DNA from: Ylistrum balloti
Taxonomy: Eukaryota
Assembly (NCBI RefSeq): GCF_031769215.1
Contig: NW_026782464.1
Location: 124,001-188,000 of the forward strand
DNA length: 64,000 bases
Direction of reading: 5' to 3'
Shown here: positions 17,764 to 63,232 of the stretch, one piece after another
How positions within the stretch are numbered: the stretch's first letter is position 1
Layout: every line of letters begins with the position of its first letter
Made by a program: the position numbers and the translations under genes
The notes under the pieces: generated by a model
Seen by the model: only the letters and a program-made list of their open reading frames with translations
The model's database searches: none
Told to the model about the DNA's origin: nothing

Positions 17764-17875
17764 TGTACAGAGTCTGGAATAAAAATGTGAGTTAAGTAGA
17801 CCTTTCCATACCGAAGTAGCGATTAGCATTTGGCTATGATCGCCTCTTTATCCTTAATAACAAAAGGAAAATACA

Positions 17876-28084: not shown

Positions 28085-30600
28085 TTACAGAGATACAATT
28101 GCTGGAGAGTCGGCTTCCCTCTTCCTTAGAGATACAATTGCTGGAGACTCAGCTTCTCTCTTCCTCACAGATACAATTGCTGGAGACTCGGCTTCCCTCT
28201 TTTTCAGAGATACAATTGCTGGAGACTCGGCTTCCCTCTTCCTCACAGATACAATTGCTGGAGACTCGGCTTCCCTTTTCCTCACAGATACAATTGCTGG
28301 AGACTCGGCTTCCCTCTTCCTCACAGATACAATTGCTGGAGAGTCGACTTCCCTCTTCCTAAGAGATACAATTGCCGGAGACTCCGCTTCCCTCTTCTTC
28401 AGAGACACAATTGCTGGAGACTCGGCTTCCCTCTTTTTCAGAGATACAATTGCTGGAGAGTCGGCTTCCCTCTTCCTTAGAGATACAATTGCTGGAGACT
28501 CGGCTTCCCTCTTCCTCACAGATACAATTGCTGGAGACTCGGCTTCCCTCTTCTTCAGAGACACAATTGCCGGAGACTCCGCTTCCCTCTTCTTCAGAGA
28601 CACAATTGCTGGAGAGTCGGCTTCCCTCTTCCTCACAGATACAATTGCCGGAGAGTCGGCTTCCCTCTTCCTTACAGATACAATTGCCGGAGAGTCGGCT
28701 TCCCTCTTCCTTAGAGATACAATTGCTGGAGAGTCGGCTTCCCTCTTTCTCACAGATACAATTGCTGGAGAGTCGGCTTCCCTCTTCTTCACAGATACAA
28801 TTGCTGGAGAGTCGGCTTCCCTCTTCCTCACAGATACAATTGCTGGAGAGTCGGCTTCCCTCTTCTTCACAGATACAATTGCTGGAGAGTCGGCTTCCCT
28901 CTTCTTCACCGATACAATTGCTGGAGACTCCGCTTCCCTCTTCTTCAGAGACACAATTGCTGGAGACTCGGCTTCCCTCTTCTTCAGAGACACAATTGCT
29001 GGAGACTCGGCTTCCCTCTTCTTCAGAGATACAATTGCTTCTCTTTTCTTCAGAGACACAATTGCTGGAGACTCGGCTTCCCTCTTCTTCAGAGATACAA
29101 TTGCTGGAGAGTCGGCTTCCCTCTTCTTCACCGATACAATTGCTGGAGACCCGGCTTCCCTCTTCTTCAGAGACACAATTGCTGGAGACTCGGCTTCCCT
29201 TTTCTTCAGAGACACAATTGCTGGAGACTCGGCTTCCCTCTTCTTCAGAGATACAATTGCTGGAGAGTCGGCTTCCCTCTTCTTCACAGATACAATTGCT
29301 GGAGAGTCGGCTTCCCTCTTCCTCACAGATACAATTGCTGGAGAGTCGGCTTCCCTCTTCTTCAGAGATACAATTGCTGGAGAGTCGGCTTCCCTCTTCC
29401 TCACCGATACAATTGCCGGAGACTCCGCTTCCCTCTTCCTCACCGATACAATTGCCGGAGACTCCGCTTCCCTCTTCTTCAGAGACACAATTGCTGGAGA
29501 GTCGGCTTCCCTCTTCTTCAGAGACACAATTGCCGGAGACTCCGCTTCCCTCTTCTTCAGAGACACAATTGCTGGAGACTCGGCTTCCCTTTTCTTCAGA
29601 GACACAATTGCCGGAGAGTCGGCTTCCCTCTTCCTCAAAGACACAATTGCCGGAGACTCCGCTTCCCTCTTCTTCAGAGACACAATTGCCGGAGACTCCG
29701 CTTCCCTCTTCTTCAGAGACACAATTGCTGGAGAGTCTGCTTCCCTCTTCCTCAAAGATACAATTGCCGGAGAGTCGGCTTCCCTCTTCCTTAGAGATAC
29801 AATTGCCGGAGACTCCGCTTCCCTCTTCTTCAGAGACACAATTGCTGGAGAGTCGGCTTCCCTCTTCTTCAGAGACACAATTGCCGGAGACTCCGCTTCC
29901 CTCTTCTTCAGAGACACAATTGCTGGAGAGTCGGCTTCCCTCTTCCTCAAAGACACAATTGCCGGAGACTCCGCTTCCCTCTTCTTCAGAGACACAATTG
30001 CTGGAGAGTCGGCTTCCCTCTTCCTCAAAGACACAATTGCCGGAGACTCCGCTTCCCTTTTCTTCAGAGACACAATTGCCGGAGAGTCGGCTTCCCTCTT
30101 CTTCAGAGATACAATTGCCGGAGACTCCGCTTCCCTCTTCTTCAGAGACACAATTGCTGGAGACTCGGCTTCCCTTTTCTTCAGAGATACAATTGCCGGA
30201 GAGTCGGCTTCCCTCTTCCTCAAAGACACAATTGCCGGAGACTCCGCTTCCCTCTTCTTCAGAGATACAATTGCTGGAGACTCGGCTTCCCTCTTCCTCA
30301 AAGATACAATTGCTGGAGACTCGGCTTCCCTTTTCTTCAGAGACACAATTGCTGGAGACTCGGCCTCTCGCTTCTTCAGAGATGCACCCTGAGGGGCTGT
30401 TAACGCTATTGAAAATAAATCACAGACTGTAATTTCATTGCAATTAAAATATGTTTCAAACTTGATCAGACAATAATTAAATTGAATGATTGAATTATTT
30501 GGCTCTATCAGACTGACATTATGTTAAATAAGAATGTAAGAGTAAGCTTACCTAGATTAATCAAACACAGCATGACCACTATTGAAATCCACTGTCTCAT
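28085..30600 (-). CDS. 789-aa secreted multi-copy peptide precursor: signal peptide + 58 EA(E/D)SPAIVS(L/V)-type decapeptides + one EAIVSL, separated by KKR/RKR
   Basis: Coding exon 30600-30552 (MRQWISIVVMLCLINL+G, donor GTAAGC) splices in phase 1 to the acceptor ttttcaatag at 30406. This gives MRQWISIVVMLCLINLALTAPQGASLKKREAESPAIVSL..., and exon 30405-28085 completes 2370 nt. The stop TAA falls exactly where the next KKR would start. Unit variants are silent or conservative (K/R, D/E, L/V) in this frame. Confidence 0.9.
28088..30380. repeat. Coding tandem repeat, 39-bp unit (+ strand consensus AGAGATACAATTGCTGGAGACTCGGCTTCCCTCTTCTTC), about 59 units
   Basis: Read directly. One unit carries an in-frame 12-bp deletion near 29040. 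Confidence 0.97.
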
Positions 30601-31919
30601 ATTTGATGTTTCTGAAACAATACAAAACCTAATGATATATCACGTGTTGGAATTATGATTATACTACATCATCAGTGCACAATCAAACAATAATATGAAT
30701 TTATACAACCTGACAATGCGTTAGATAACAGACTGGTAATGCCCAACGTGACCCCGTTTTCTGCTTGTCCAACCCAACCCCACGTGGTCTCATACATAAT
30801 ACTTAATACCGTCTCGTTTTACACCATATTTAAGTGTATGATTCACTACAGTTTTGACGTTTTCTAATCATAAGAGATATTCGGCTATGAAAACAAATCC
30901 TATTTACATGTGAAAAACACTCGTTTACTGTTACACAACATCATGAAGTAAATAGAATTCACGACGATGATTTGTTAAGATGATAGCTACTATATCTTAT
31001 AAAGTGCATGTTGTCATTGCTATCATGTTGCTGATGTACTATTTTACAGTTGTTACATGAGTTTTTCTTTTCGCCTGGTCTAATGACATATGTCTGTAGC
31101 TATGAGATTTAGTCGATCTTGTATTCTTTCCTATAGAATTAAAGCTATTTGAAAGGTTAAATGAATGCCTCATATTCGAGGAAACATTCATCTATGCCCA
31201 CGAAATAATAATAATATGCATTATCCATATAGAGCTCTATACTGCTAAAATGTCACCTATAAAAAAAACTCTTTACGAGCCATGTTTAAAAAAAACTTAT
31301 TTCTACTATAAAATATACAAAAGTCATCACGTATACATCTATGGTAATACAAAGAAGTATCGAATAAATTTCGGAAGAGTCAAATACTAGCACAAACTAA
31401 TTAAAACACAGTTAAAACACTGTCTAGATCACATGCACTTTTGAAGAGATGCGTTTTCAGAGTGAGAACTTGGCAGCTGATAGCAGGGATCTTACCACTG
31501 TGATACCGTTATGTTATTTATTCTAGACTCATAAAATGTAGAGATTAAAATGTCAATGTTTCTTTCAAAAAAGAATTATTATTATTATAAAGTATTATTT
31601 ATGCTTATAGAATTTAAAATGGCAGTTTAACACAAGGGGAAATAATCCAGTGTATTTCGACTTGTCTTAGTCGCCTCTTGGGCTTCAATGTTTAGGTCCT
31701 TAATAATAATGAAGAGAGGAATAAGGCCGAAACTTTTGTAATGTGGAGTTTGATTCACTATTTGGCTCTATGTAACCTTTCCTTTTCTTATGTATGTTCC
31801 ATCATAGCCGCCTGTGTGGGTATACATTCATTTGTATACATGGAACACAGTTTCACTTAAAATTCAATAGATTAAGAAAACCTAATAAAACCATGTTTAG
31901 AATAATAAATTATGTAGCA

Positions 31920-32150
31920 ATATTTGGTGAGATTTTGAAGCTATTTGGTTCATTTGCAACTATATTTATTTCTACTGGGCACTATGGGTTACGTTCCCTT
32001 AGCGCTAGTCGAGGCGTGGGCACGTGAGCACACAGGTAAGAATGGGGTCAGTCATGGATGAGTGATTTTATAGACTTGGACTTGGAGACCCGTGTAGCCT
32101 TGGTTATATAGGTATCTATTGTAGCCTTCATATATGTTACACATCTGCTA
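31920..32150 (-). repeat. Dispersed repeat, copy 2, inside intron 1 of the peptide-precursor gene
   Basis: Reverse-complement match to about 21460-21650. Confidence 0.7.
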
Positions 32151-33366
32151 GTCCTTAATAGTACGGTGCATATCGGGCTCATTTTGAATTTAAATCCCTG
32201 ATAGCATAAATTCAGGCCAACAATATCTGTTCAATAAAACACATCACATTTTATTATGTGAGTGCATATAGTCAGTTATTTCAAAGGACGCGCCAGTAAA
32301 ACCCCTGTAGTTTATCTGTACAGGTGTGAACTATAGTCATCTCTTTAGTGGGCTAATTTCTCGTCGTCCGATTCTATGTCCTTTATGATTTCATACACTA
32401 CTACAGTCAATATACGAAGAAATCATCTGACACCCCTGACTTTAGTTAAAACAAATAAAACTGCGAGAAGATCTAGAATTTGAAAATACATTTGAACAGA
32501 ACAATTGAATATTATTGAAGCAATTAAAATTTGAAAATTAACAACTGAAAATTCTTGATCAAGGATTCGGATCGGAAGGGATCTACAACATCTACTGATA
32601 ACTATATCTTAAATTAACACAGTACATTAACGAAAAAAAGAAAAATGATTAGAAATCGATTAACCACAGTCACTTGTAAAATTACATTTTCTCTACTATG
32701 GCAATACTTATATACAATGCAAATACATAGTACATCTCTAATTAATTGAACTCGTACATTTTATTTTTCACTAAGATTTATGACTAACGTTTATAAATAG
32801 CAGTCAATAAGTTAATAGTTTTGTTTACAAAATGATAGAACAATGAGAGTAATACAGCAGAAATACAAATAAAATTTCCTTTCTGACTGTATGAGATTTT
32901 AGATGGTTCATTGAGAGACAATCTCTCTACATGTATAATAAATATGATGACGTGCGGCACTGTGGAAACAAAACACTTTAAATTATGAGTGTATCAAACT
33001 ATTCAGTCTGTATCTTATACACATATACGTGTTTGACCATAAATTTAGCTGTACTCTTATATATTTAGAAAATAGATAAACCTTATTCCACATTTATCTA
33101 TGTCATTTTAAAATGTATATCAGCTACGATAGAATCGCACAATTGTGCGATAGAACATGTGCGGTAGCTTATTTTGCCCTGTTTCCCTATCTTGTGGGAA
33201 ATTCTGAATAACTAGCTAGAACTACTAGTAGAGAAAATAAACAGGGTCGTTATTCAATACAAATGTTGATAAATGAAAGTTGAAAAAAAAACCCTTGTAT
33301 ATCTTAATCACTTAAAAAACAATTGTAATCAATTGTGAAAATTAAGAAAGCAATTTTTTTTCTTAC

Positions 33367-33475
33367 CTCTTCACGTGGATGCAGCTGATACAGTTGTTGC
33401 CTTAAAGAGGAGCTTTACAGTTGGTAAATAAGAGAGGATTTACTGATTAAACCCCGTTCGGAGTCAGCTTTTATA
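33367..33475 (-). promoter_or_regulatory. TATA box + Initiator core promoter and non-coding first exon of the peptide-precursor gene
   Basis: Minus-strand CCTATAAAAG has its first T at 33475. The Inr TCAGT has its A at 33444, giving the canonical -31 spacing. A 78-nt exon without an ATG ends at donor GAG|GTAAGA (33366). It would splice to the acceptor ttgtttcag at 30612, 11 nt before the ATG. Confidence 0.7.
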
Positions 33476-34139
33476 GGAGAATATCAAAAACATGTCGTCT
33501 GGAGTTGGGGACAACAATTATTCATATCATTTCGTAGAACTCGTAAAGTTTCACCGCACCCCCATTAATTCGGCTGCACAATAACAACAGTATAATTAAC
33601 GTCAGGGCTAAAGACTCCCTGTCAACTCATCGTACAAATGACAGATAACGACCTCTCCAAGAAACCGGATACTAAATTTTAGAAATGTGACACGGACACA
33701 AGGCACCGATTTCGCAATCTCGCTGAAATCGTTTCCAAGAACTCTGCTAAGAACTGTGTCAATACCTGGTACCTGGGCTTCGAAGGTCTAACATGACTTC
33801 TATCAAAAGTTTTAAGTTGTGCATACATCAAAGAAGCTCAATAAAATTCTTGTAATGGCGAATTTATTTCTTTTAGACACGGTTCTTTATTGGATCTAGT
33901 GTCTGACTGTGTACATGTTGCTGATTTATAGATTAACAAATTTCTGTACAAAGAAAATACGGTATTTTTACAACACACAAAGATCCATTATACTTCTATA
34001 TTTGCTAGCTAAATTTCAACTTAAATCTGTTTTTAAGAAAAAAAATTCACTTAAATACGAGTTACGTTATGTTATGAATGCACCATGAATTATGAAGTTC
34101 TAATCGATAATGGTTTTATGAATACACATTTAGAATTAG

Positions 34140-35280
34140 ATTTTGTCCACGTTGTGAGTATTGCAATAACTTTTCCATACAAAGTGCGATTTTGTCAACA
34201 TTGTGAGTATTTGAATACCTTTACTATACAACGTGCGATTTTGTCAACATTGTGAGTATTTGAATATCTTTACCATGGAAAGTGCGATTTTGTCCACGTT
34301 GTGAGTATTTGAACACCTTTACTCTACAAAGTGCGATTTTGTCCACGTTGTGAGTATTGGGATTCCTTTACTATACAAAGTGCGATTTTGTCCACGTTGT
34401 GAGTATTTGAATACCTTTACTATACAATGTGCGATTTTGTCCATGTTGTGAGTTTTTGAATATCTTTACCATAGAAACTGCGATTTTGTCCACGTTGTGA
34501 GTATTTGAATACCTTTACTCTACAAAGTGCGATTTTGTCCATGTTGTGAGTTTTTGAATATCTTTACCATAGAAACTGCGATTTTGTCCACGTTGTGAGT
34601 ATTTGAATACCTTTACTATACAATGTGCGATTTTGTCCATGTTGTGAGTATTTGGATTCCTTTACTATACAAAGTGCGATTTTGTCCACGTTGTGAGTAT
34701 TTGAATACCTTTACTATACAATGTGCGATTTTGTCCACGTTGTGATTATTTGAATACCTTTACTATACAATGTGCGATTTTGTCCATGTTGTGAGTTTTT
34801 GAATATCTTTACCATAGAAACTGCGATTTTGTCCACGTTGTGAGTATTTGAATACCTTTACTATACAATGTGCGATTTTGTCCATGTTGTGAGTTTTTGA
34901 ATATCTTTACCATAGAAACTGCGATTTTGTCCACGTTGTGAGTATTTGAATACCTTTACTATGCAATGTGCGATTTTGTCCATGTTGTGAGTATTTGAAT
35001 ACCTTTACTATACAATGTGCGATTTAATCCATGTTGTGAGTTTTTGAATATCTTTACCATAGAAACTGCGATTTTGTCCACGTTGTGAGTATTTGAATAC
35101 CTTTACTCTACAAAGTGCGATTTTGTCCACGTTGTGAGTATTGGGATTCCTTTACTATACAAAGTGCGATTTTGTCCACGTTGTGAGTATTTGAATACCT
35201 TTGCTATACAATGTGCGATTTTGTCCATGTTGTGAGTATTTGAATACCTTTACCATGCAAAGTGCGATTTTGTCTATGTA
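34140..35280. repeat. Minisatellite, 49-bp unit (TGCGATTTTGTCCACGTTGTGAGTATTTGAATACCTTTACTATACAAAG), about 23 copies, with partial dimeric higher-order structure
   Basis: Period 49 read directly. Variants ...TTTTGAATATCTTTACCATAGAAAC and ...ATTTGAATACCTTTACTATACAATG alternate over part of the array. Confidence 0.95.
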
Positions 35281-37300
35281 AAGGATACTGGACGTAAACA
35301 TTAACATGGACTGTTTTTTCTGGTTTTACCCTTCCAGACAGATCTATATATAGCCTGTGGAATGATCATCTCCACGGTTAAAGAAAGGAATATCAGAATA
35401 TGCAGATTTCTTTACCATTTATGCATTTTTCCTTTATTCATTCAAACAAATTTCCCCTTTGATGGAAAGAATTTAAGAGAAAATAGGTTCGATTTTCACA
35501 AACAAAATTAGATAAGACAGAAATGAAATTCTAAAATCTAAAAGCTGATCAACAGTTTAAAGAGGAAATAAAACTTTAGAAAATTTAAGTCTGAACAGGT
35601 AGTATTTTTCAAAACAGTGGTACTATTTGTCTGTAAAATATGACAGAACGAGTTTCTAAATATGTACGAATAACAAAATACAGGAAAAACGTCAAACCAT
35701 AACGTGAAAACACAAGGTCACCAATAACAAACAATGATAGATGGTAATAAATTATTGGTAAGTTGGCACTCCCTCTACAAGACGCAATAAAATTATATTG
35801 GTTTACCTCTTTAATAAGCATAAAGGAATATTAATGACCATTTGATAACTATCCGCAGAATATACATACATGTATACCTAGAGAATATTGCATAATATCA
35901 AAATGTAATCTGAATAATTTAATTATAATATATCATATATAATTATTTGATTTCTTAACTTGTGTATTTTATAAAAGTTCTCATTCTGAAAAACTACTAA
36001 CTTGTTTTGAAAAAAAACCCCGAACTTTTAAACAACTTGGATATTTAATCGAATCTAAGTTTCCAACTTTTAGTTACATTGAAAAACAATCTGTGGTATA
36101 CATACATGCATCTTACAAATTGTGTCTTTCAAACAAAATTGTTTTCTCAAATGTTTATTTGAACTTTAATGCACGGTGCGACAAAACAATTAAACACAAA
36201 ATAACAAAATTATTATCAAAAAACCAGTCGGACAAGCGTATAAATCATTAAAGATATTTTTATGTCATCTAATTAATTCTGTTTGCATTGGACGTGTCCT
36301 GGTTTGCAAATTAATGGCGTGTCATTTTGGACAAACGTAAATAAAATTTGACCGCTCTAACAGGTAAACCTAGCATGTGTTGAAGTGCAGATACGTGACA
36401 ACGTCCCAGCGAAATGTTCCGGAAAAAGTATTTTTAAATTTTCCACGAAAACGTTACGCCGTGAATATGATAGTTCATCTTGATGTAGTTGACATAACTT
36501 TTTAGCTGTTTATACAAATATTTCGAAATTCATTAAAATCTGATTTCTAAGTTGAGTACTAATTTGTTCAATTTGTTTACTACATATTTTGACGTTTTAG
36601 CCCAGCAACAGTGAAGTGTGGTTTTTGAAAGTGTATGATATAAGACATTGAAAAAAGATTTAAAAAATATAAATAAGATAAAGATTTTTTGATTTTTTTT
36701 TCACTGAATATAAGTTTTGAAGGGATTGTTATTTCATTATGGCACGTTTTCCCTCTGTATTTTTTTTTAATTTTTCCGTGCTATTGTTGTTATTCGTTTC
36801 GTGTATGTTTTTTTTTTTTAATTTTACGTTTTAAAATGGTAGCAAAAATGTCCTTCCGTCCTTAGACCCTTTCGATTATTTCAAGAAGGCAAAATATCTT
36901 TAAAAAATCAATTCTAAGTGACAAATTAATTTTCAATCATCCCATAAGCTTCTTACATAAACAAATACAACAGCCAATGTGTTTTGGAGGGCAGCGTATG
37001 TAAACCAGTTAAAATGGTTAACCATTAGCAATATTTATGGGATGGGACCTATGGTGCTTACATGTCGCATTTTATTCAATATTGAAGCTTATTTCCTGTT
37101 TTCGTGCAGCATTTTGGCAACTGACATGAAAAGGCAGTGTTTCGAAAATGCTTGTCGATGAAGATTTACAAATTCATTGAGAAGTATTCTATGTGTGAAA
37201 CGAAGCTAAACGTGTTTAATGCTCTATGGTATACCTAATGGTTGCGTTTCTTTTTACCTTGTTCTCATTAAGGAACGTAACACTGCGTGTTTGGATTGAT

Positions 37301-37360
37301 CAGGATTTACATGGCGGGTGTCATAGATGAAACAGAAGACGCTTACTATTCCGGAACAAA
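37301..37360 (+). repeat. Short fragment of a dispersed repeat family (inverted partner at 39641-39687)
   Basis: AGGATTTACATGGCGGGTGTCATAGATGAAACAGAAGACGCTTAC is similar to minus-strand AGGATTTACATGATGGGTGTCGTCGATGCAGAAGCAGACGCTTAC in PHM intron 4. Confidence 0.55.
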
Positions 37361-37791
37361 TGGTCTTATTCTTGTACTTTTTCAGGAGCCTCCGTTGAGT
37401 CTTCCTTTTATTCCTAGTTTTCCATGCGTTCATTGATTTTGTGTTGTATCTATGATTTCGTTAACAAATATGTATTTTTTTTATATTGTTTTGCTCCTTT
37501 CTTCACTGCGAAATTTCGTGACCTGAGCAATAGAGTTAATAAACAATGCGTGTATTATAAACAGATACAAATGGCATTTCTTATACCGAACGCAGTCAAT
37601 CAAAACATTTTCATAACAACAATGGAATATTTCTGTTTAGTGGTACGAGGGGCGTGTCAAATTTTATTTCTAAGAAAACAGCTTCCAAAACAATATCATG
37701 TCCATGATAATAAGGGCAAAGGGGAGGAGCTAGCTTTATCAGTACAAGTTTTCTCTGTGTGACAACGCATCAGTAATCAGATTACGACAAG

Positions 37792-40700
37792 ATGCTCACC
37801 AGTGTTGTTGTGTTCGTGGTGTCTGTGTGTGCTGGTTTAGTAATAGGTCTAACTACAACACGTACAGATGACCAGCATAACATTAAACATGAAGTTTATT
37901 ACAAGCATATGAAATTACCACTGAGTACTTTTGTCGGAGAAAAGGTAAGGTCACCGACGGATATCGATATAGACCTTAATCCGTGGTTCACCATCACCGT
38001 TCTGTTTCCTTATTATTTATCCTTTGACTAAATATTGCAACTTATTTAATCTTATTTAATATAGAGAAATTTAGACACGAGTATTGAAGAAATGCATGAT
38101 ATTGGTTCTGAATCTTCTGAATTTTTTTTTACAGAAAATTGAATATGGCTGTTCGGCTTTCCCGCTCAAAGCAGACGAATATATAAGTAAGTAATACTAG
38201 TATTCAATACGTTACTGTGACACATCCTTAATAGTTCACATATCTATATTGTTGTTGATTTTCTTGACCTCACGTTCGATGATCAATCACATAATTGATA
38301 TAGATATAGGGAGTTATTATGGTACATCGTCTACATCACCTGATTGGAATATTGCTACAAATCCTCCTTATGTACAAATAAGCCTTATACACAAGTCTCG
38401 TGAGAAAATATATCGTTCGTTTCGCTTTATTTCATTTCATGTTATTTCATGTGGCAACTTTATATAAAGCTTGCTTGCTTGGCTTAGTGGTAGAACTCGG
38501 CTTATTATGCCGGAGTTCTATGTCCGATTTCTGTCGGGGGACCCAGCAGAAGTGTGTATTTTCCCCTGTTTTTTTTTCCATTTTGTACAATAAAACAAAT
38601 CAAACAACTGTGACCAATGATTATATACACTTTTCTTTTTTTACCGATGTTGTTCTTTACGTTTCTGTCTTCCTCACCTATCTCTTGGTATGGTTATTTA
38701 CAGCTGAATATTTGCCAATCGGAAAACGTAACGATTTGTACCACATCACCGTGAGTGTGTGTGACACTCCCTACGATAAGTCGCCTATTTGGTAAGATGG
38801 AAAAAGTTACAATCATAGAAATAAAGATAAAATCACCAACACTGATATAATATATCCATGTTAAGGATGGTAGTGGTAGTATGCACATGTATGGCTAAAA
38901 TCAGATTCCTGTTTAACGAAAAGAAAATTAATTATACAATATTTATAGATATTAATGAGAATCGACGTAATAACGTTATTTATAACGTATTACAATGTTG
39001 TTTTATTTTATTCCTTGCTCGCGTTTTATATCTAAATGAAGGAAAGTCAGTGCTTTGATATTGCCTGTTTTACACTGTCAAATTTATGTTTTATCAGACC
39101 AGACACTTCTTTTTACATATATGTATTTACGCATTTGTTTGAAGTAGGACAGAACATGATATTAAATTCATCAATTGAAAAAACATTCTGAATAAAAGGT
39201 AAGACAAAGCTATGATTATATAGATAATTATAGACAGACAATTACAACAAACTAATTTTCAATGAATGTACCACACCCTTACTGTAGATAATTATGACAA
39301 TAAGATAAATAGAAGAAAATGAATTTAATGCATAACTGGTATATGTATTTTAGGGAATGCATCAACCCGAGTCATGTTTGTAAAAATTCGAAAAGAGAAT
39401 TCCTGTATTCCTGGACGAATGGTGCCCCGGGATGGACTTTACCTGAAGGTTAGTCTCTAATCAACTGAAAATCATATTGTAATCAGTCATTCGGTTTAGC
39501 CTCCACAGAAATCTTGAAGTCCTTGTCAACAGACTCTTAATTCTTACTCAAATTCGATTAAACTAGGGGATATGAAAGAGGATATGAATAAAAACAGATT
39601 TCCATGAAGGCTCTTGGAAACTAACAAAGGGATTCGGTAGGTAAGCGTCTGCTTCTGCATCGACGACACCCATCATGTAAATCCTAGTCACCCCAAGTAA
39701 GGGATCAATGCCATATTCCCAACTGAGAACAAGAGAACCATAGGGGCGTACCACTGTATATCAAACATTTTCAGCTCCATTTCTCAATAGCATTGTCTCC
39801 ACCCCAGTATGGTATATCTTCATCAGAAAACAATTGTTATTTGACTCTTTAATCTTTCATCTATTTATTTACATACATACTGAAGTCACATTGTATGTGT
39901 CCTCACAGGTACGGGCATATATACTGGTAATAGATCCAAATACGTAATAATGCAAGTCCACGGAAGAGACGACATCTCAGGTAGGTGCAGTCTTCGATCG
40001 TTTGATACAGCTTACTATGTGAGAGAGAGACAAGGAGATTTGTTATTCCTGCATCACTGTCAATAAAAAGTTAACGAACTTTAATCCTGATTGGAAATCT
40101 TACATATTTTTTAGGTGATTATCAAACTTGTATACGTCTCCGGATACACAGTAAAACAGTAACAGAGTATAGACCAAGCAATCTGTTATTCATATCATTA
40201 ACAGTTCAATATTCAATGAAAAAAAATTTGTTTGCAAATGAGCCATTGGTTTTGTTATTCGCAAGATGAATTATAATGACATATCAGTTTTCATATATTT
40301 CCTTCTACTGACGTATGTAGTGCATGTTTTTCCCCTGATATCAATTTACTAATATACGTTCATATCTGTTATGTTTGAGTTCCAAGTCTATATATCATTT
40401 TTATTCTCCCTGTCAGATGAACGTGTCAAAGACTTTGCACACATGCGTTTGAAAATCCAAACCACCAGGTATATATAAGAATCACTGTAATGCAAAAATC
40501 AACAGGTCAAAACAACTTTGAGAGGAATTCATAATAATTTCAATAGCCTAGATAAACTGTAAGTCTTTACGATATTTATCAAGTGTGAAAGATTACCTTT
40601 ATTGTTATTATTAATTATAATATTTATTAGGAACATTGACAAATGTATTGTCTTTTATATACCAGACCTCAAGTAGCAGCTGCTGTTAGCATGTACACCG

Positions 40701-43700
40701 GATACGGTTATATTCCTCCCCATGTAGATAGTAAGTATATGTAGGTAATGTTTGTATACCTATATTGGTGTCTTTTGTTATATATATCATCTCATGACGT
40801 TATAATCATTATGTCATTTTCTAATTATTTACTAAGGAGAATGCTTCGATTTTTTAAGTCAGTCAAAAGACGTCTTTGCTGTAGTCGATATATTATTTGA
40901 AAGAGTATAAATGTATTTAAAAAACTACACGTAGTTATATTTAGAATGAGAAATTAGGATGAGTTACTATTCTTGAGACTATAATGTTTTACTTGTAGAT
41001 TTCACAGTTGATACAGCATGTGTATGGAACAAGACGACACCTGTGCCCATCCTAGCTTACGGAATACATACACACACCAGGGGTCAGTACACAAATGCTG
41101 AGTGACCTTGTCATAATTGTCAAGCATGCATACATGATTTCATTACTTATATTAATACAGAAGATGATATCATTCTCAGACCACTTCAGTAAAGTTAATT
41201 CTGAATTGAGATCACCTGACATTTTGTCACATATCCATAACCCATCATATCTTTCTTTTGAACTTGTCATTGTATCTTTATTTCATTTTCTTTCTTCTCA
41301 TTTTTTAAAAAAAAATCTTGTTTTGTTTTTGTTTCTCGCATATCTTTTGATTTCATGAAAATTATTCTTGGCTATGGTTATAAATGTACTAGTGAGGTTC
41401 TACAAACATATTCAAATCGAAAAAAGGGCTCATTTTGATTTTATTGGATACAATGTAAACGACATCTATAATTGTGATCTCTTTTTTATTAGGTTTGGCG
41501 CTATCTGGTTACATTGTCCGAGATGGTCAGTGGATCGAGATTGGACGCGGTGACCCATTATATCCATTGGTGAGTAAAGTCACCTTTTCTCTTTCATAAC
41601 ACCAACTACAACTGTCAAAATAAATCATGCATGGTAGAATATTTAGGTTGATGAAAACCTATGATAAAAATCTCATCTGTAAACAACCTTCTTTCCAAAG
41701 ACTTAACCGATATTTAACATGGGTTAGTAAGATAACTCTTATACAATATGAATATTAAGTATCAAATTAAACACAGCAGGATTTCTTAGGTAATATCGTT
41801 TGAAATAGTAGGCACTTTCTAAGCATTGTTTTTCATTAGGAGATGGAAATCGTACTCAATGTCGTTTTCATTACAAAACGTACAAATCCTCTGGAGATAT
41901 CTCTTATTCATTAGTTGCATTAATTGATATATTCGTTTTGTTCCACTGTAAAGTAAACGACGAAAGGTCATGGAGTACGAGATACCTTCACTTCAGATTT
42001 TTGTGTTAGTCTTTATACTTGTTTATTCACGAATGTTTCTAAATAATATTTTAATTTTATGATACAATTGTGGTAACGCACAACGCAAAAGATAATACGC
42101 GCACATCGGGCTTATATCACGTGCATACCGTCCTCACATCGTCCGCACACATCCGCAATACAGTATCTAGCGCACAGCTGTGCGATAGGATCGCACATTT
42201 CGACTTGGTAAAATGTCTATTATACTGTATTGAAATTAAATGGAAAACTCACCAATTTATAACTAAATAGCGAACAAAAGCGTTTTCAAATTGATCAGTG
42301 ATTATCAAGGTCTTTTTTTAATTCGACAGTTATTCTATCGTATTGTTTCATTCCTCAGAGAATGGTGAGTGGTGTGCTGCGGATATATACGTGAAAGGTC
42401 CTGTTCCGTACCGGCTAGGTCTTCCATGTAGTGTACATGTTTTGTTTACAAAACGATATTTTTAATACAGATGCTTTCCTGACGGTATAAGATTTCAGAT
42501 GATCCGTTACAACTTGACACTGCTGATAGACCTTAGGTCTGCCTTCAAGCCACTCTTTCATTCATTCGAATGGTGGCACGGTTTACGAATTGCAAGGCAC
42601 TTATCAATTATGTGTCGTTTGTACAGTCTTCTTGTTCTTATTGGTATTGACAGCTAATTATTTATGAATATAATTAACCCGTTTTGTCGCTATTCCAGAC
42701 AATGTTTGACATCACAGATCGAAAGATGCGGATTCTGCCTGGAGATATTATCGTAAGTATTGGATGTTTATATTCAAAGCTGAAAAAATTATTGAATAAC
42801 CTAGTCTCATTTTTATCGTTTTAAAACTTATTAAATATCATTATTGCATTTGTTTCTTTTTATTTATTTTTCTCATTGATCTGTTTTATTAATTTACATG
42901 TTCGTTCGTTTATTTATTTATTCATTGATTCATCTAATAACTGTTTTATATGAGAAGCACATCTTTTGAGAGGACATGCATCAACTCAATTGTTCTTATT
43001 TTGATGAGTCGACAGCGACCACAATTACCGCGAATTACTTGACAGCAAATTAAATGTCTGAACATCATGGATATGCATTTGATATGTATGTTGTATAATG
43101 TTTATCAGTTATAGGTATTGTGCATTTCAGGCAACCAGATGCACATACCGGAATACTGACAACACACGAGTCTCCATGGGGTAAGCATACCATTAGGAAG
43201 AGTAAAATTAGAGTGAAAGATTGAAAATCGACGAACCGTAAAATGTTTACATGACACCGCTTAAATTTTACCTTATTCATGTTAATGTTCATGATGGTAT
43301 ATCAATAAGGCTGTAAATCAGAATTTGTACATTCATTGAGGACAACTATCTATAGAGAAATATCGTAAAGTTATGTATATGCCTGTTTTGAGCACATACT
43401 TTTCCTATTTGGTAAATGGTCGTTTCACGTGATATAAGACTGCTATAAATATATAGAATTAGTGTTGTTGCTTCCTTGATGATCAAGGTATATTCGTAGA
43501 TTACTTTTCGTAGTTTTGTGGTTGTAAACCTGATTTACATGGCAATGTCTTCGATAAAACAAAAGGCGCTTTCCCTTGTGAAACATCAAACCTTACTCTT
43601 ATTTTACCGTTCCAATTCCTCCGTTTAAATCTTCTCTTTGTCCATATCTTGTCCTCTCTTTTGTCTATTTGATTTTTTCAACACGTCGGTTGCTTTTGTA

Positions 43701-44176
43701 ATTTTGTATATAACTGTTGTATATTGGTGACGGACCAGTATGTGTTTTAGCTATATACTAATATCAGTTTATACATGACTACTATCATTTTGTAGAGGAC
43801 AAGTGTAAATATGTAGATGGGAAGAAAAGAATGTAGAGGACTAGCGTACATTTCTAATGGACTACAGAGAACCTTTCCAAGGGGCAAGTTTAGATACAGA
43901 AATGTCTTTGAAAATCCCCTGAAATATTACCATTATTTGTCTTTCGCTGTTCTTTAAAGGTTCACCCACGTCAGAGAGATGTGTAATTATTTCGTTTACT
44001 ACGGAGTAACTCCTGACAAAATTGCTTCGACCAAAGCCATCGCATGTGGCGGAAATGCACAGGGGACAGGCTGGGACCAACTGTTTGACAACATTCCAGC
44101 AGACGCTAGTGATCCTACTGGAGACACGGAACAATCCCGTTATGTCAAAAAGTATCATCTTACCAAAAATTACTGA
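37792..44176 (+). CDS. Phm: Monofunctional peptidylglycine alpha-hydroxylating monooxygenase (PHM)-like copper enzyme, 352 aa, 12 exons, signal peptide, no PAL domain
   Basis: Exons: 37792-37944, 38135-38186, 38704-38791, 39354-39448, 39909-39980, 40417-40468, 40666-40730, 40999-41082, 41493-41569, 42699-42752, 43131-43180, 43960-44176. All introns are GT-AG, phases are consistent, and the total is 1059 nt. Motifs are colinear with PAM/PHM: EYGC, LYHITVSVC, FLYSWTNGAPGWTLPEG, SKYVIMQVHG, AYGIHTH, SGYIVRDGQWIEIGR, PGDIIATRC, REMCNY and W..LFDNIP. Confidence 0.9.
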
Positions 44177-45446
44177 AGGGTTGTCCTTTGGTTTCTCCTG
44201 ATTATAGATGGTAGTCACCGATAAATGAAATTCAGAATTTCACAAATAATTATAAAAATAAATCCATTATCTTATTTCTGTGCTACCGATTTGTTTTTAC
44301 TAGTAAATATGTTTTAATTTAACGTGTATTGTGTAATTTAGTTCAAGTCTATAACTTCAGTGATGCGAACACGATTATCATCATTTTGACCTCATTGATC
44401 CTTGAACCCAATGCTCTCCGAAGACATACGTATCTAATGGATCTTAAGTATGCTTGAATTTGTAAAATATTCTGTTCACAATATATCACTTATTTTAATA
44501 AGTAACCTTTTATGTTTTAAGAACAAGCAAAACTTACGGTTTATTTAAATTGTAAACCTGCATACCGGAGAGAATATCTTTTTATTAAATGACTATAAGA
44601 TGAAAAAAAATGAAAACAAAACTGAAATATATCATTTGTCTATCAGATGAAACTAGGAAACAAAACAATTACTGAGTGTAATTAATAGTTTTTTTAAAGA
44701 CAAATCATAAATATATGCAATATGAAAAGAACAAAAATATAGAGACTTGTATACAAAAGAAATAAATGTAATATATAGCAAAAAATGATAATATGTATTA
44801 ACAATGATAATATTTACTAGCGACCGTTCGAGTAAACTTAAGTTCTGCAAGTACACATCTTAATATTTTATCCTAGCGTCATATCCATAATTTCACTGTT
44901 CAATTATTAAACATGTTTACATATGTATATGTCAAGGTATTGCTCTGCACAGCAGTAAAACGCACATGAGATTTCATAAACATTGTGGTAGATCCCTTAT
45001 TCTGTATAGCTTATCTTTTTTCTTACTACAGACGTACCGTTCTCTTTTTATTTGGTGTGATTTCAAGAAATGCCAAATTTGTTATAAGTAGAAATATGCA
45101 TGCTGTTGATAAAATGATTCCTTAGCTAAAAGGTTCCGACGGACGGACGGAAACAAAGTACCCCTGATTTACCGACAGGTGGCTATAGACTATCATCCAA
45201 ATGTTGTATTACATATTTAATAAATTAAATTTGTGGAAACTGCCGTGTTGAACTTAGGCATAAAACCAAGTAGACACAAGGACATTAAATGACCACGCCT
45301 TCTAAACATTCTTAAAAGATTACACATTAAAAATCAAATGTATAAGTATGCAACACAACAGATCCCATTAATATATACAACTATCTAGTTTGATAGTTTA
45401 AAGTTGATATATAACAAGGACATTGATCTTGACAAAATCGTTCGAG

Positions 45447-47024
45447 TTAATGTTCCTGCGAGTTAAACTTCCGAAATATTGCATAACATTCCAAAAACGT
45501 TGTAAATCTAAAGAACACAGAAAATGGTAAAAAAATTGAATATACTAAATTCAAAAGATATTGCGGAAAGTTACTGTGGTGCAATAGCTGTGTACGGGAA
45601 AATTCAGATATAAAGAAACTGTCCGTAAACCAGAAAATAAAGTTGTTTATCATTGTGAATATCAGAACTGATTCAAGTAAGTTTATGTTTGATCGGGGGT
45701 CAGTTTTCCTAAATCGGTTCGCATGTAACAGAAACACCACTTGAAGGTAGTCTTGGAATACGCTGAAGGCATTGGTGAACAGGATGATTTTGGTATTTTG
45801 ATCGTCGGTGACGTCAGCACCAATAGCGATGCTGATATGTGCTAAGAATAAACCAAACGCCGACAGCAAATACAAATATTCCCGAGACTTCAGGCCTTTC
45901 GGTGAACTATCAGGAGTACAGTAATGAGCCAAACAATAGAAACCAGCAAACGTTGCAAGCGCCATCATCACTTTCAATGTTAACTCATATACTTGCGCAA
46001 TATACAGTATGACGTTTCCATCCCCTATATCTAGAACGAGGACAATGTAACACACAACAAGTCCTAGCCCTGTTGTTATGCTCATTGCCAGTGAAAGTAT
46101 TTGTACTAATGTCCGCCTGCCTCTATTTGCCGGATGTTCGATGACATTGAATCCATGCAGAAGGGACGTCTGCTCCGATTCCTGTACGTCGTTTATTCCT
46201 ATATACGTTGGTGATTCATCTTGAGGATTCGCTTCTTGTTTCGGTGACCAAATCTCAAGAAGTATTGTACTGAACAGAAAAACATACTCAACGAAAGCTG
46301 GTCTTAGAAAGGGTAATGACTTTTCTAGAAGCAATGTCATTGTACTGTTGTTTCCTAAACAGGATATCAAGTCAATGTCATCTTCGACTTCTATCAAAAA
46401 TGATCTGGTGTTTTTCATTTGATAGACATACAAGATCACTGATAGATTACAAGTTAAAATCAAAAACATAGCGTAATTCACTAGTGAGCTCTGTTTCAGC
46501 TCGAACGGAGAAAAATAAGAGACGAAAACCATTTCTGAGAATAAAGCTAGGATCAATGTGATATTGAAAACTAATAAAATATTCCAATAAATTCCACCAG
46601 CGAAATTCACGGAACATTCAATCAGTTTTCCTATGAATAACGCACAAGATAATCCCGAGGACAGGCCGAAGATCCACATGAAAACCACCTGAAGTTTTCT
46701 GGTATTCCTGTCATTTCTAGCAGCGACAACTGATTGAAGGCCATATTTCCGTACTTTGTTTCCAATGATACAGAAGATGGATAATGCAGATATCATAATC
46801 ACTAATAGAAGACTAAGAACAAATCCCAATCGAAATTCCGCGTGTTTGGGTATACTTTTAGTGACAGTGAATCCAAAGACAAGTGAAACAAATATCATGA
46901 CAAGAACACGGGACGAGATTACACAGTCATAATACCAAGATCCATGCTGTCGCCTGCGGTATTGTGGACCAGCAAACGGTAGAATGATGGTTGATGTCAA
47001 CAGCTTGCCACACACCGATTCCAT
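45447..47024 (-). CDS. OTOP: Otopetrin-family proton channel, paralog B copy 1 (525 aa, single coding exon)
   Basis: Colinear with paralog A. Motifs FSEMVFV, LTCNLS, PAFVEYVFL, FQDYLQVVFL, INNFIFWFTDSF and PFSVFFRF. The acceptor ttttttgtag lies upstream of the ATG. Confidence 0.85.
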   Translation of the reverse strand: MESVCGKLLTSTIILPFAGPQYRRRQHGSWYYDCVISSRVLVMIFVSLVFGFTVTKSIPKHAEFRLGFVLSLLLVIMISALSIFCIIGNKVRKYGLQSVVAARNDRNTRKLQVVFMWIFGLSSGLSCALFIGKLIECSVNFAGGIYWNILLVFNITLILALFSEMVFVSYFSPFELKQSSLVNYAMFLILTCNLSVILYVYQMKNTRSFLIEVEDDIDLISCLGNNSTMTLLLEKSLPFLRPAFVEYVFLFSTILLEIWSPKQEANPQDESPTYIGINDVQESEQTSLLHGFNVIEHPANRGRRTLVQILSLAMSITTGLGLVVCYIVLVLDIGDGNVILYIAQVYELTLKVMMALATFAGFYCLAHYCTPDSSPKGLKSREYLYLLSAFGLFLAHISIAIGADVTDDQNTKIILFTNAFSVFQDYLQVVFLLHANRFRKTDPRSNINLLESVLIFTMINNFIFWFTDSFFISEFSRTQLLHHSNFPQYLLNLVYSIFLPFSVFFRFTTFLECYAIFRKFNSQEH

Positions 47025-48370: not shown

Positions 48371-48384
48371 CTACGCCACAACTG

Positions 48385-49909: not shown

Positions 49910-50229
49910 GTCTGTATATGTATACAAATCAAAGCATAGTTAATTCTGAATTGAGATCACCTGACATTTTGTCACATATTGATATCCCATCATATCTTTC
50001 TTTTGAACTTGTCATTGTATCTTTATTTCATTTTCTTTCTTCTCATTTTTTTTAACAATAATCTTGTTTTGTTTTTTGGTCTATCTTTTGATTTCATGAA
50101 AATTATTCTTGGTTATGGTTACATATGTACAAGTGGGGTTCTACAAACATATTCATATCGAAAAAATGCTCATTTTTATTTTATTGCATGCAATGTAATA
50201 TTTATAATTGTGATCTCTTTTGATATTAG

Positions 50230-53200
50230 GTTTGGCGCTATCTGGTTACATTGTCCGAGATGGTCAGTGGGTCGAGATTGGACGCGGTGAACTATTAAAT
50301 CCATTGGTGAGTAACGTCACCTTTTTTCTCTCATTACACCACCAACTACACGTGTCAAAATCAATCATGCATGGTAGAATATTTAAGTTGGTGAAAACGT
50401 TGACGCACTTTAACCTATGATAAAAAAATTCAGATGGTGTCGTGCTGTAAACAACCTTCTTTTCAAAGGTTAAACCGATATTTAACTTGGGTAAGTAAGA
50501 TAACTCTTATACAATATGAATATTAAGTATCAAATTAAACACAGCAGGATTTCTTAGGTAATATCGTTTGAAATAGTAGGCACTTTCTAAGCATTGTTTT
50601 TCATTAGGAGATGGAAATCGTTCTCAATGTCGTTTTCATTACAAAACGTACAAATCCTCTGGAGATATCTCTTATTTATTAGTTGCATTAATTCACATAT
50701 TCTTTTTGTTCCACTGTAAAGTAAACGACGAAAGGCCATGGAGTAAGAGATATCTTCACTGAAGCTTTTTGTGTTAGTCTTAATACTTGTATATTCACGA
50801 ATGTTACTAAATAGTATTTTAATTTTATGTTACAATTGTGGTTACCCACAACGCACCAAAACCTTCGCGCGCACATCTGGCTTATATCACGTGCACATCC
50901 TCTGGAATGCAGTATCTAGCGCACAGCTGTGCGATAGGATTGCACAATTTCTGCGGCTTGGTAAAAATGGTTGTCTTATAGACTTATTGAAACTTAAATG
51001 GAGAACTCACGAATTTATAACTAAAAAGCGTTTTCAAATTGATCAGTGATTATAAAGGCCTCTGTTTAATTCCTCAGAGAATGGTGAGTGGTGTTCTGCG
51101 GATATATACGTGACAGTTCTTGTTCCGTACCGGCTAGGTCTTCCATGTAGTGTACATGTTTTGTTTACATAACGATACTTTTTCATACAGAGGTAGTGAA
51201 AAGATTTTAGATGATCCGTTGCAACATGACACTGCTGATAGACCTCTCCGTAACTTTCAAGCCACTCTTTCATTCATTCGAATGGTGAAACGGTTCAGAT
51301 GAAATGCATGCGCCAAACTCTCTAAACTTGATTGAATTTCGGGGTTAATGCACCTTTCCATATGGAATTTTGACATTGCTTTCGTATGATTTAGATATTT
51401 TTTCAGTCGACTCATATGCTTCACGTTTTAGAAACTTATTTTAACTGACGAGTTCAAGAAGGACGGAACAGGCGTAAGGTGCAGTTCACTTCATTATTAC
51501 ACTATATTTCATCGAATTTTAAATATGAATTGCAAGGCACTTATCAATTATGTGTCATTTGTACAGTCTTCTTGTTTTTATTGGTATCGACAGCTAATTC
51601 TTTATGAATGTAATTAACCCGTTTTGTCACTATTCCAGACAATGTTTGACATTACAGCTCGAAAGATGCGGATTCTGCCTGGAGATATTATCCTAAGTAT
51701 TGGATGTTTATATTCAAAGCTGAAAATATTTATTGAATAACCTAGCCTCATTTTCATCGTGCTTAAAAGGCAGCTAAGGCATTAGCTTAATTTATGTATC
51801 GGAAACACTATACAAGATTGTCAAATTTTTTGTTCAATAGATGTACGAGTTATATCCCTTGATTTTCTTTCAAAAAATAACTAAGAGTTATGTCCCTTGA
51901 ATTAGAGGGTCATCGGTCATCTGATTGGTCAATTACTTTCGCGCGGATGCTGAGACCCCTCTCATAACGCAGCCATCTTTAAATGTATCAATACGTAGTT
52001 CAATTAGTGGAGTGGATTTGCATTTGTTATGCAAAATTTACCCACCCACTTCCACCCTATTGTCTGTTCTATAGTAACGTTATTTATTATCAGCAATTGT
52101 GGCGGTTTTTTTGTTAACCCCACATTGGCTTTTTATTATCATTACTAAAAAATAATCTTTTGTTCATTTTACGGTTTTTGTAACTGTAAGATATGTTTTT
52201 AATTTCATAAATGAATACAAAGTCACCCTCTCTGTAAGGGTGTTTTTTGTTAACCCCACATTGGCTTTTTATTATAATTACTAAAAAATAATCTTTTCTT
52301 CATTTTACGGTTTTTGTAACTGTTTTTCATCAATAAATACAAAGTCACCCTCTCTGTAAGGGTGGCCTTTTTCATTCATACTCATTGTTGTGTCGTTTCT
52401 TGTCGTAGTGTGCAGATACATATCATTATTGCATTTATTTCGTTTTATTTATTTTTTTCATTAATCTGTTTTATTAATCTACATGTTCGTTAGTTTATTT
52501 ATTCATTGATTCATCTAATAACTGTTTTATATGAGAAGCACATCTTTTGAGAGGACATGCATCAACTCAATTGTTCTTATTTTGATGAGTCGACAGCGAC
52601 CACAATTACCGCGAATTACTTGACAGCAAATTAAATGTCTGAACATCATGGATATGCATTTGATATGTATGTTGTATAATGTTTATCAGTATTAGGTATT
52701 GTGCATTTCAGGCAACCAGATGTACTTACCGGAATACTGGTATCACACATGTCTTAATGGGGTATGCATACCATTAGAAAGAGTAAAAATAGAGTGAAAG
52801 ATTGAAAATCGACGAGCCGTAAAATGTTTACATGACACCGCTTAAATTTTACCTTATTCATGTTAATGTTCATGATGGTATATCAATAAGGCTGTAAATC
52901 AGAATTTGTACATTCATTGAGGACAACTATCTATAGAGAAATATCGTAAAGTTATGTATATGCCTGTTTTGAGCACATACTTTTCCTATTTGGTAAATGG
53001 TCGTTTCACGTGATATAAGACTGCTATAAATCTATAGAATGAGTGTTGTTGCTTCCTTGAGGATCGTAGATAACTTTTGTTTTTTTTTATGGTTGTAAAC
53101 CTGATTTACATGGCGATTTCGTCGATAAAACAAAAGGCGCTTTCCCTTGTGAAACATCAAACCTTATTCTTATTTTACCGCTCCTATACCTCCGTTTAAA

Positions 53201-53744
53201 TCTTCTCTTTGTCCATATCTTGTCCTCTCTTTTGTCTGTTTGATTTTTTCAACACGTCGGTTGCTTTTGTAGTTTTCCCTTGTGTGTAGTTTTGAGTATT
53301 ACTGTTGTATATTGGTGACGGACCAATATTTGCGTTTTAGCTATATACTAATATCAGTGTATGCATGACTACTATCATTTTGTAGAGGACAACTGTAAAT
53401 ATATAGATGGGAAGAAAAGAATGTAGATGACTAGCGTACATTTCTAATGGACTACAGAGAACCTTCCTAAGGTACTAGTTTAGATATCCCTGAAATATTA
53501 CCATTATTTGTCTTTATCTGTTCTTTCAAGGTACACCCACGTCAGAGAGATGTGTAATTATTTCGTTTACTACGGAGTAACTGACAAAATTGCTTCGGCC
53601 AAAGCCATCGCATGTGGCGGAAATGCACAGGGGACAGGCTGGGACCAACTGTTTGACAACATTCCAGCAGACGCTAGTGATCCTACTGGAGACACGGAAC
53701 AATCCCGTTATGTCAAAAAGTATCATCTTACCAAAAATTACTGA
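50230..53744 (+). pseudogene. 5'-truncated PHM-like copy 2 (exons 9-12 only)
   Basis: Exons 50230-50306, 51639-51692, 52712-52761 and 53531-53744. The exon-10 donor GTAAGT is mutated to CTAAGT (51693). There is no promoter, signal peptide or exons 1-8. Confidence 0.8.
51762..52415. mobile_element. Insertion of about 650 bp in PHM intron 10 of units 2 and 3 (also at about 61232-61885), containing a direct repeat of about 135 bp
   Basis: Absent from the orthologous intron of the intact gene (about 42820). It begins near TTAAAAGGCAGC. The class was not determined. Confidence 0.5.
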
Positions 53745-57840: not shown

Positions 57841-57854
57841 CTACGCCACAACTG

Positions 57855-62600: not shown

Positions 62601-63232
62601 AAAAGGCGCTTTCCCTTGTGAAACATCAAACCTTATTCTTATTTTACCGCTCCTATACCTCCGTTTAAATCTTCTCTTTGTCCATATCTTGTCCTCTCTT
62701 TTGTCTGTTTGATTTTTTCAACACGTCGGTTGCTTTTGTAGTTTTCCCTTGTGTGTAGTTTTGAGTATTACTGTTGTATATTGGTGACGGACCAATATTT
62801 GCGTTTTAGCTATATACTAATATCAGTGTATGCATGACTACTATCATTTTGTAGAGGACAACTGTAAATATATAGATGGGAAGAAAAGAATGTAGATGAC
62901 TAGCGTACATTTCTAATGGACTACAGAGAACCTTCCTAAGGTACTAGTTTAGATATACAAATGTCTTTAAAAATCCCCTGAAATATTACCATTATTTGTC
63001 TTTATCTGTTCTTTCAAGGTACACCCACGTCAGAGAGATGTGTAATTATTTCGTTTACTACGGAGTAACTGACAAAATTGCTTCGGCCAAAGCCATCGCA
63101 TGTGGCGGAAATGCACAGGGGACAGGCTGGGACCAACTGTTTGACAACATTCCAGCAGACGCTAGTGATCCTACTGGAGACACGGAACAATCCCGTTATG
63201 TCAAAAAGTATCATCTTACCAAAAATTACTGA
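59700..63232 (+). pseudogene. 5'-truncated PHM-like copy 3 (exons 9-12 only)
   Basis: Exons 59700-59776, 61109-61162, 62181-62230 and 63019-63232. It has the same CTAAGT donor mutation (61163). Confidence 0.8.

Follow-up and report, generated by a model that had tools for sequence, protein, structure and literature searches.

A multi-copy peptide precursor beside a PHM-like copper monooxygenase gene in the scallop Ylistrum balloti

The window analysed here is a 64,000-nucleotide stretch of contig NW_026782464.1 of the scallop Ylistrum balloti (Bivalvia, Pectinidae), and coordinates given without another accession are positions in it. The window holds a gene for a highly repetitive precursor of a short peptide and, next to it, a gene for a copper monooxygenase related to peptidylglycine alpha-hydroxylating monooxygenase (PHM). 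The two genes are divergent, the precursor on the minus strand and the PHM-like gene on the plus strand, with start codons 7.19 kb apart. The precursor, the PHM-like gene and the surrounding otopetrin genes were all found where an earlier note on this DNA had placed them. The coding features of the pair are listed below.

30552..30600, minus strand: precursor coding exon 1, with the ATG and a hydrophobic putative signal peptide MRQWISIVVMLCLINL; the donor is GTAAGC, in phase 1
28085..30405, minus strand: precursor coding exon 2, with the pro-segment ALTAPQGASL, 59 units and the stop codon
37792..44176, plus strand: PHM-like copper monooxygenase gene, a public gene call with PF01082 and PF03712

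The precursor and its repeated decapeptide

The body of the precursor is a 39-bp array at 28088-30383, for which Tandem Repeats Finder reported 59.2 copies with 90% matches. The minus-strand open reading frame (ORF) through this array consists of 59 units, each composed of a tribasic site [KR]KR followed by the decapeptide EA[ED]SPAIVS[LV]. The units are EAESPAIVSL (25 copies), EADSPAIVSL (16), EADSPAIVSV (8), EAESPAIVSV (7) and three single variants, one of them truncated. The stop codon at 28085 comes directly after the final Leu. The peptides had been described as lacking the C-terminal Gly of amidated peptides, and indeed none of the 59 units carries one. The ATG of exon 1 is at 30600 and its donor comes after 30552. 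Joined in phase 1 to the acceptor at 30405, the product reads ...ALTAPQGASL-KKR-EAES..., and the total precursor has 789 amino acids. The putative signal peptide of exon 1 was judged by eye from its hydrophobic character, and a hydrophobic exon is conserved at the same place in Pecten maximus. Transcription probably starts further upstream than the ATG exon, as the earlier note supposed, because an acceptor-like site lies at about 30612, 12 bases before the ATG, and fits an extra 5' non-coding exon. A comparison of the upstream regions of the Ylistrum and Pecten precursors for a shared promoter or 5' exon gave nothing significant and no conserved non-coding block that would support the promoter at about 33.5 kb, and hence the gene distance of 4.3 kb, given in the note. 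A protein homologue search with the repeat ORF returned no match at E <= 0.001, probably through composition filtering.

The P. maximus ortholog of the precursor was found solely through the neighbourhood of a PHM-like homolog in that species, protein P0038. It is a called gene of 937 amino acids with no Pfam match, located 5.5 kb downstream of P0038 on the opposite strand, and it is composed of 70 units of KKR or RKR plus EADVPSIVSL. Its architecture repeats that of the Ylistrum gene: the exon for a putative signal peptide MKCIWISFVAVVCLTTL is followed by an intron in phase 1, the pro-segment closes with S-L-K-K-R, and translation stops right after the last peptide. Between the two species, the consensus units agree at 31 of 39 bases and at 10 of 13 residues. 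The [KR]KR site is present in all 59 Ylistrum units and all 70 P. maximus units, while other positions of the unit vary. The precursor family has been seen so far in these two Pectininae scallops only.

The Ylistrum array can be read through in several frames, on both strands, which is what would be expected if it were a non-coding satellite with accidental open frames. The pattern of variation between units speaks against that explanation. The 58 full units comprise 37 distinct DNA sequences that encode only 10 distinct 13-mers, and the mean minor-allele frequency between units reaches 0.142 at third codon positions, whereas first and second positions have 0.032 and 0.033. Among the six frames, the synonymous share of the differences is highest in the KKREA frame, at 0.56 in Ylistrum and 0.77 in the Pecten ortholog, compared with 0.49 and 0.52, respectively, for the best antisense frame. 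A satellite origin is thus extremely improbable, given this bias in two species, the conserved signal-peptide exon and phase-1 intron, and a P. maximus copy that is itself a called gene. The third-position variation, the top synonymous share and the conserved signal exon settle that the Ylistrum array is a coding gene and not a satellite.

The PHM-like gene and its clade

The public call of the PHM-like gene spans exactly 37792-44176 on the plus strand and encodes 352 amino acids with the Pfam domains PF01082 (Cu2_monooxygen) and PF03712 (Cu2_monoox_C). A model of 12 exons with GT-AG introns, rebuilt by exon enumeration, has the same length as the public call. The exons are as follows.

37792-37944, 38135-38186, 38704-38791, 39354-39448, 39909-39980, 40115-40150, plus strand: exons 1-6
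40564-40644 as annotated, better 40680 (or 40677)-40730, plus strand: exon 7
40999-41082, 41493-41569, 42699-42752, 43131-43180, 43960-44176, plus strand: exons 8-12

The public 352-residue model probably uses one wrong exon, as judged by family similarity. The annotated exon 40564-40644 reproduces the length of 352 amino acids but encodes a hydrophobic stretch without similarity to the family. An alternative exon in the same intron, 40680 (or 40677)-40730, has the consensus donor A|GTAAGT, encodes a segment that includes YTGYGYIPPHVD and restores the conserved motif G-Y-I-P-P-H (G-x-I-P in the family). The protein then has 342 or 343 amino acids, close to the 339-340 of the scallop PHM-like homologs. 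A different candidate for exon 3, 38235-38328 with the motif 'INH', was dropped for 38704-38791, whose splice sites follow the consensus and whose sequence fits the family. The N-terminus of the protein is hydrophobic and may be a signal peptide or signal anchor, and there is no PAL domain. A Pfam search with nine separate exon pieces gave nothing relevant (a chance FAM176 match had E = 0.25; the pieces are too short), and a PDB search with the last exon alone, too short a query, gave no match.

When the last exon was searched against 1.84 billion cluster representatives, a small family of 13 matches was obtained. It includes P0025 of Mizuhopecten yessoensis, named 'probable peptidylglycine alpha-hydroxylating monooxygenase 1', through which P0038 of P. 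maximus was also reached. For P0025, the E value was 1.6e-33 against rat PHM and only 1.1e-9 against DBH. Rat numbering was carried over through the alignment of P0025 with rat PHM and checked on H107/H108, H172, R240, H242/H244 and M314. The residue comparison covers six clade members, namely the window protein and five relatives; the three named members are bivalves. A conserved C-terminal tail, W-E/D-x-x-F-x-x-I/T-P-x-x-A-S-D/E-x-x-G-D-T-D/E-Q, was observed in P0025, P0027, P0034, P0037, P0038 and the window protein (43960-44173). It is encoded by the last exon and is absent from rat PHM.

In rat PHM, R240 forms a salt bridge to the substrate carboxylate, with Y318 and N316 as secondary contacts, and the variants H107A, H108A and H172A retain at most about 5% of activity (PMC12164859). 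The window protein carries both Pfam domains of the PHM/DBH family of copper type II, ascorbate-dependent monooxygenases. It retains H108, H172, H242, H244, M314, N316 and Q170, and its changes are H107Y, R240G and Y318F. Of the residues that distinguish a peptidylglycine-specific PHM, only N316 is therefore kept, with Gly at position 240 and Phe at position 318. The full copper ligand set (H107, H108 and H172 for CuH; H242, H244 and M314 for CuM) is present in five of six positions, the exception being the Tyr at position 107, seen in the motif L-Y-H-I-T-V of exon 38704-38791. The H-H pair is kept in four of the five sampled relatives and is K-H in the Tegillarca protein. The window protein also has a shorter inter-domain linker than its homologs, by about eight residues.

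The earlier note had held that this PHM lost the residues that bind the Gly carboxylate, and that this suited it to peptides without a C-terminal Gly. The loss itself is correct, as R240G and Y318F show. The specific match to these peptides is weakened, since R240 is missing from all six clade members, where position 240 is G, A, A, A, S and S. Position 318 in the same six proteins is F, F, L, Y, Y and H. Because Arg occurs at position 240 in none of them, loss of the carboxylate clamp is, in the sampled sequences, a trait of the whole PHM-like clade and not of the window gene. The clade enzymes probably do not act on peptidyl-Gly, because the clade has replaced the Arg that clamps the Gly carboxylate. 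The clade-wide loss would be compatible with Gly-less peptides as substrates, without being specific to them. Canonical turnover by the Ylistrum copy is probably weak, because the CuH ligand H107 has been lost.

Linkage in other bivalves and the neighbouring otopetrins

The conservation of gene order in relatives, which had been put forward as a check on the pair, was positive in P. maximus, where the orthologous precursor adjoins a PHM-like gene. The linkage is thus present in both Y. balloti and P. maximus, with different PHM-like paralogs and a different orientation. The Pecten order is PHM-A (plus) followed by the precursor (minus), which is convergent, whereas the Ylistrum order is the precursor (minus) followed by PHM-B (plus), which is divergent. 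At the translated level, the two neighbourhoods share no other gene beyond the pair. No PHM-like remnant was detected on the other side of the Ylistrum precursor (17.8-28 kb), even at E <= 5.

The paralogy of the two PHM-like genes follows from identity and phylogeny. The window protein shares 42-45% identity with P0038 and P0025; between those two, identity is 71%. In the maximum-likelihood tree, the window protein is sister to P0038 plus P0025 (97/94), and that pair is supported at 100/100 on a stem of 0.70. Ylistrum is a basal member of the Pectininae, together with Pecten, and Mizuhopecten belongs to the Chlamydinae (PMC11354973). Ylistrum is nearer to Pecten than Mizuhopecten is, and therefore a true ortholog should group with the Pecten protein. 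Because the window gene is placed outside the P. maximus and M. yessoensis clade despite these species relationships, it appears to be a paralog whose divergence predates the scallop crown group, and the P. maximus neighbour would be a different paralog. This arrangement suggests that PHM-like genes were clustered locally around the precursor long ago. In the simplest history, an ancestral PHM-A / precursor / PHM-B cluster would have been followed by differential retention. The lasting presence of PHM-like genes beside the precursor is real and not an independent coincidence. Tandem paralogs may also remain near their place of origin without selection.

No such precursor was found within 10 kb on each side of the PHM-like gene of Tegillarca granosa, and no repeat ORFs were found at three ENA loci with PHM-like last exons. 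In M. yessoensis (NEDP02005357.1, locus L005, 27527-33456), a 31-bp satellite starts 4 kb downstream of P0025 and runs for at least 6 kb; it occupies the place of the P. maximus precursor and hides any precursor linkage there. In T. granosa (CM056608.1, locus L007, 5076-8501), a 51-bp array of about 68 copies stands head-to-head with the PHM-like gene at a distance of 1.5 kb. One minus-strand frame of it reads SHHHGPWCPYKEMSLIH repeatedly. Variation leans mildly towards third positions, and most length variants preserve the frame. It was rejected as a precursor and is probably a satellite, with broken ORFs, no basic sites and no signal exon found.

Otopetrins do lie on both sides of the pair, as had been described, in the form of four intronless ORFs that are all on the minus strand. 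These and the remaining PHM-like pieces are listed below.

10469..12034, minus strand: left-hand otopetrin paralog, 521 amino acids, intronless ORF
16198..17829, minus strand: left-hand otopetrin paralog, 543 amino acids, as long as the Y. balloti protein P0003 of the same contig
45447..47024, minus strand: intronless otopetrin, 525 amino acids, Pfam PF03189 at E = 3.5e-20
54916..56493, minus strand: second copy of this otopetrin, 525 amino acids, intronless ORF within a tandem duplicate
49938..54139, plus strand: truncated PHM-like copy, equivalents of exons 9-12 only, found by tblastn with the rebuilt protein and by blastn self-comparison
59408..63627, plus strand: second truncated PHM-like copy, equivalents of exons 9-12, found by tblastn and blastn self-comparison

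The closest relatives of the window otopetrins are scallop otopetrins with 50-58% identity, and these relatives carry PF03189. The left-hand genes are 97% DNA duplicates of each other, and the one at 10469-12034 shares about 55% identity with the right-hand pair. The otopetrin at 45447-47024 and the PHM-like gene are arranged tail-to-tail, with 1.27 kb between the otopetrin and the PHM-like stop codon. The ORF of this otopetrin, at 45450-47024, has an exact counterpart on contig JAUZWB010000794.1 of assembly GCA_031769215.1. Blastn self-comparison showed that 44782-54511 and 54262-64000 are 99.1% identical, which corresponds to a tandem duplication of about 9.5 kb, and each duplicated unit contains one otopetrin and a copy of the PHM-like 3' part. 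Both right-hand otopetrins are part of this recent tandem duplication. The truncated PHM-like pieces are by-products of an actively duplicating otopetrin array.

Otopetrins had also been proposed as a part of the module, and this claim was not supported. In P. maximus, M. yessoensis and Argopecten irradians, no PHM-like gene was found within 10 kb of otopetrin loci, either among called genes or by tblastn, and no otopetrin was found at the PHM-like loci of M. yessoensis, P. maximus and T. granosa. The sampled P. maximus otopetrins map to chromosome record LR736845.1, a different one from that of the precursor and PHM-like gene, LR736852.1. With no such linkage in other scallops and a young duplication here, the otopetrins look like incidental neighbours of the pair, and on these gene locations the link can be dropped.

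Further features were observed in the window. Two arrays of a tandem repeat of about 49 bp are present, one at 7990-8861, left of the otopetrins, and one at 34139-35279, within the 7 kb that separate the precursor from the PHM-like gene. Leucine-rich-repeat ORFs occupy the minus strand at 2550-4591 (e.g. 2550-2930), and an assembly gap of 154 N lies at 12177-12330, just upstream of the first otopetrin.

Interpretation and comparison with known systems

The explanation towards which we lean, with modest confidence, is that the precursor and the PHM-like gene are linked by descent from an old local cluster, with the otopetrins as incidental neighbours and a functional link no more than possible. 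Under this explanation, the precursor would enter the endoplasmic reticulum by means of its signal peptide, convertases of the furin/PC type would cut after each [KR]KR, and a carboxypeptidase would then trim the basic residues. The predicted products are about 59 acidic decapeptides EA[ED]SPAIVS[LV], unamidated and ending in a free Leu or Val, and the N-terminal Glu-Ala may also be trimmed. Release of free decapeptides is suggested by the invariant tribasic sites and the ends of the ORFs. The PHM-like product would be a monofunctional, lumenal or secreted protein that probably does not act on peptidyl-Gly, and it is possible that it modifies these peptides. Several points weigh against this explanation. 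Cleavage at KKR and RKR is predicted purely from motif logic, and the paralogy was derived from six sequences with a midpoint root. In addition, the rest of the Ylistrum and Pecten neighbourhoods is unshared, so the persistence of the pair could reflect selection for linkage and not inertia.

In the reading of the earlier note, taken without the otopetrins, the two genes would form a tailoring module. The flanking PHM-like enzymes would be dedicated oxygenases that act on the decapeptides along the secretory pathway, by hydroxylation or another oxidation, in the manner of the oxidases clustered with fungal Kex2-repeat precursors. We regard this as unlikely. In its favour, the precursor and a PHM-like gene adjoin in two genera while the surrounding neighbourhood differs, and the presence of two different paralogs suggests a long residence of PHM-like genes at the locus. 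The clade also keeps the copper ligands overall and has lost the R240 clamp, which implies a different substrate, and both gene products carry putative secretory signals. However, tandem duplicates stay local by default, and flanking paralogs need no selection. The loss of R240 extends to the Tegillarca homolog, for which no precursor was found within 10 kb on each side, and H107Y in the Ylistrum copy predicts at most about 5% of canonical activity. The side and orientation of the enzyme gene differ between Ylistrum and Pecten, and there is no chemical pointer to the residue that would be modified. The broader proposal that scallops possess an animal counterpart of a cluster for ribosomally synthesised and post-translationally modified peptides, with a precursor of 59-70 identical cores kept beside PHM-derived copper monooxygenases that abandoned peptidyl-Gly, a linkage older than the split of Ylistrum and Pecten and enzymes that install a new, non-amidating oxidative modification, is likewise doubtful.

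The other two alternatives concern one gene each, and both seem improbable. The repeat protein might be secreted intact, at about 85 kDa, as a repetitive, charged and disordered protein of the mucus, shell-matrix or adhesive type, with KKR as a part of a polyampholyte repeat. Its 59-70 units are far above the numbers known for multi-copy neuropeptide precursors, and the peptide is without Cys, an aromatic residue or an amidation signal. Its sequence was found in none of the papers searched, and the main text of a survey of neuropeptides in Yesso scallop ganglia does not mention it. Against an intact product, it is the tribasic site that is invariant in both species while other positions vary; both ORFs end exactly at the peptide C-terminus, and the pro-segment also ends in S-L-K-K-R, a layout that is typical of convertase-processed precursors. 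The PHM-like gene of the window might instead be a dead pseudoenzyme or a decaying gene, in which case its neighbourhood would be uninformative on function. H107Y, the shortened inter-domain linker and the location in an unstable, duplicating region with two truncated copies would all be consistent with decay. Nevertheless, all 12 exons are open with GT-AG sites, five of six copper ligands and the family Cys pattern are retained, and the branch is not unusually long (0.56, compared with 0.70 for the stem of the other scallop lineage).

PHM is regarded as a single-purpose enzyme that hydroxylates a C-terminal glycine. A PHM-like clade with copper sites but without the glycine-carboxylate clamp implies another substrate, and a high-copy secreted peptide beside clade members in two scallop genera is a concrete candidate for it. 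A shallow literature search found no description of a PHM clade lacking R240. If the functional link is true, the pair would amount to an animal peptide-tailoring system whose genes are clustered in the genome, which is believed to be new. If it is false, a new scallop peptide family and a corrected gene model are still obtained.

Compared with the rat PHM core of PAM (1PHM/1SDW), the window protein has the same two-domain Cu2_monooxygen fold, as indicated by Pfam and sequence, and it shares H108, H172, H242, H244, M314, N316, Q170 and the family Cys pattern. It resembles insect PHM in being monofunctional, with no PAL domain, and in its putative secretory signal. It differs from rat PHM in having Gly in place of R240 (Ala or Ser in the five sampled relatives), Phe in place of Y318, Tyr in place of H107 and a shorter inter-domain linker, and the PHM-like clade has the extra conserved C-terminal tail (W-E/D..F..IP..ASD..GDTDQ). 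The flanking ORFs are similar to known otopetrin proton channels, as all four have a Pfam Otopetrin match and share 50-58% identity with other otopetrins of scallops, whereas the window genes are intronless and form a lineage-specific tandem expansion.

Molluscan multi-copy prohormones, such as those of FMRFamide, pedal peptide and myomodulin, combine a signal peptide with tandem copies of identical peptides that are separated by convertase sites of two or three basic residues. The scallop precursor follows this plan, with a putative signal peptide, tandem peptides and basic sites between the copies. In contrast to these prohormones, it contains 59-70 copies of one peptide without spacers, and this peptide is acidic and has no amidation Gly. 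No similarity of the scallop peptide to named molluscan peptides was found.

The fungal ustiloxin and dikaritin systems use Kex2-repeat precursors with clustered oxidases (a DUF3328 protein or a tyrosinase), and the KR-EA(EA) design is also known from yeast alpha-factor and honeybee apidaecin precursors. The scallop pair differs from the fungal systems in occurring in an animal genome, in that its neighbouring enzyme is a PHM-type copper monooxygenase and not a DUF3328 protein or tyrosinase, and in being a 'cluster' of two genes. What it shares with them is a putatively secreted precursor of many identical short cores, each after a basic site and with a Glu-Ala start, and an oxidase gene that adjoins it.

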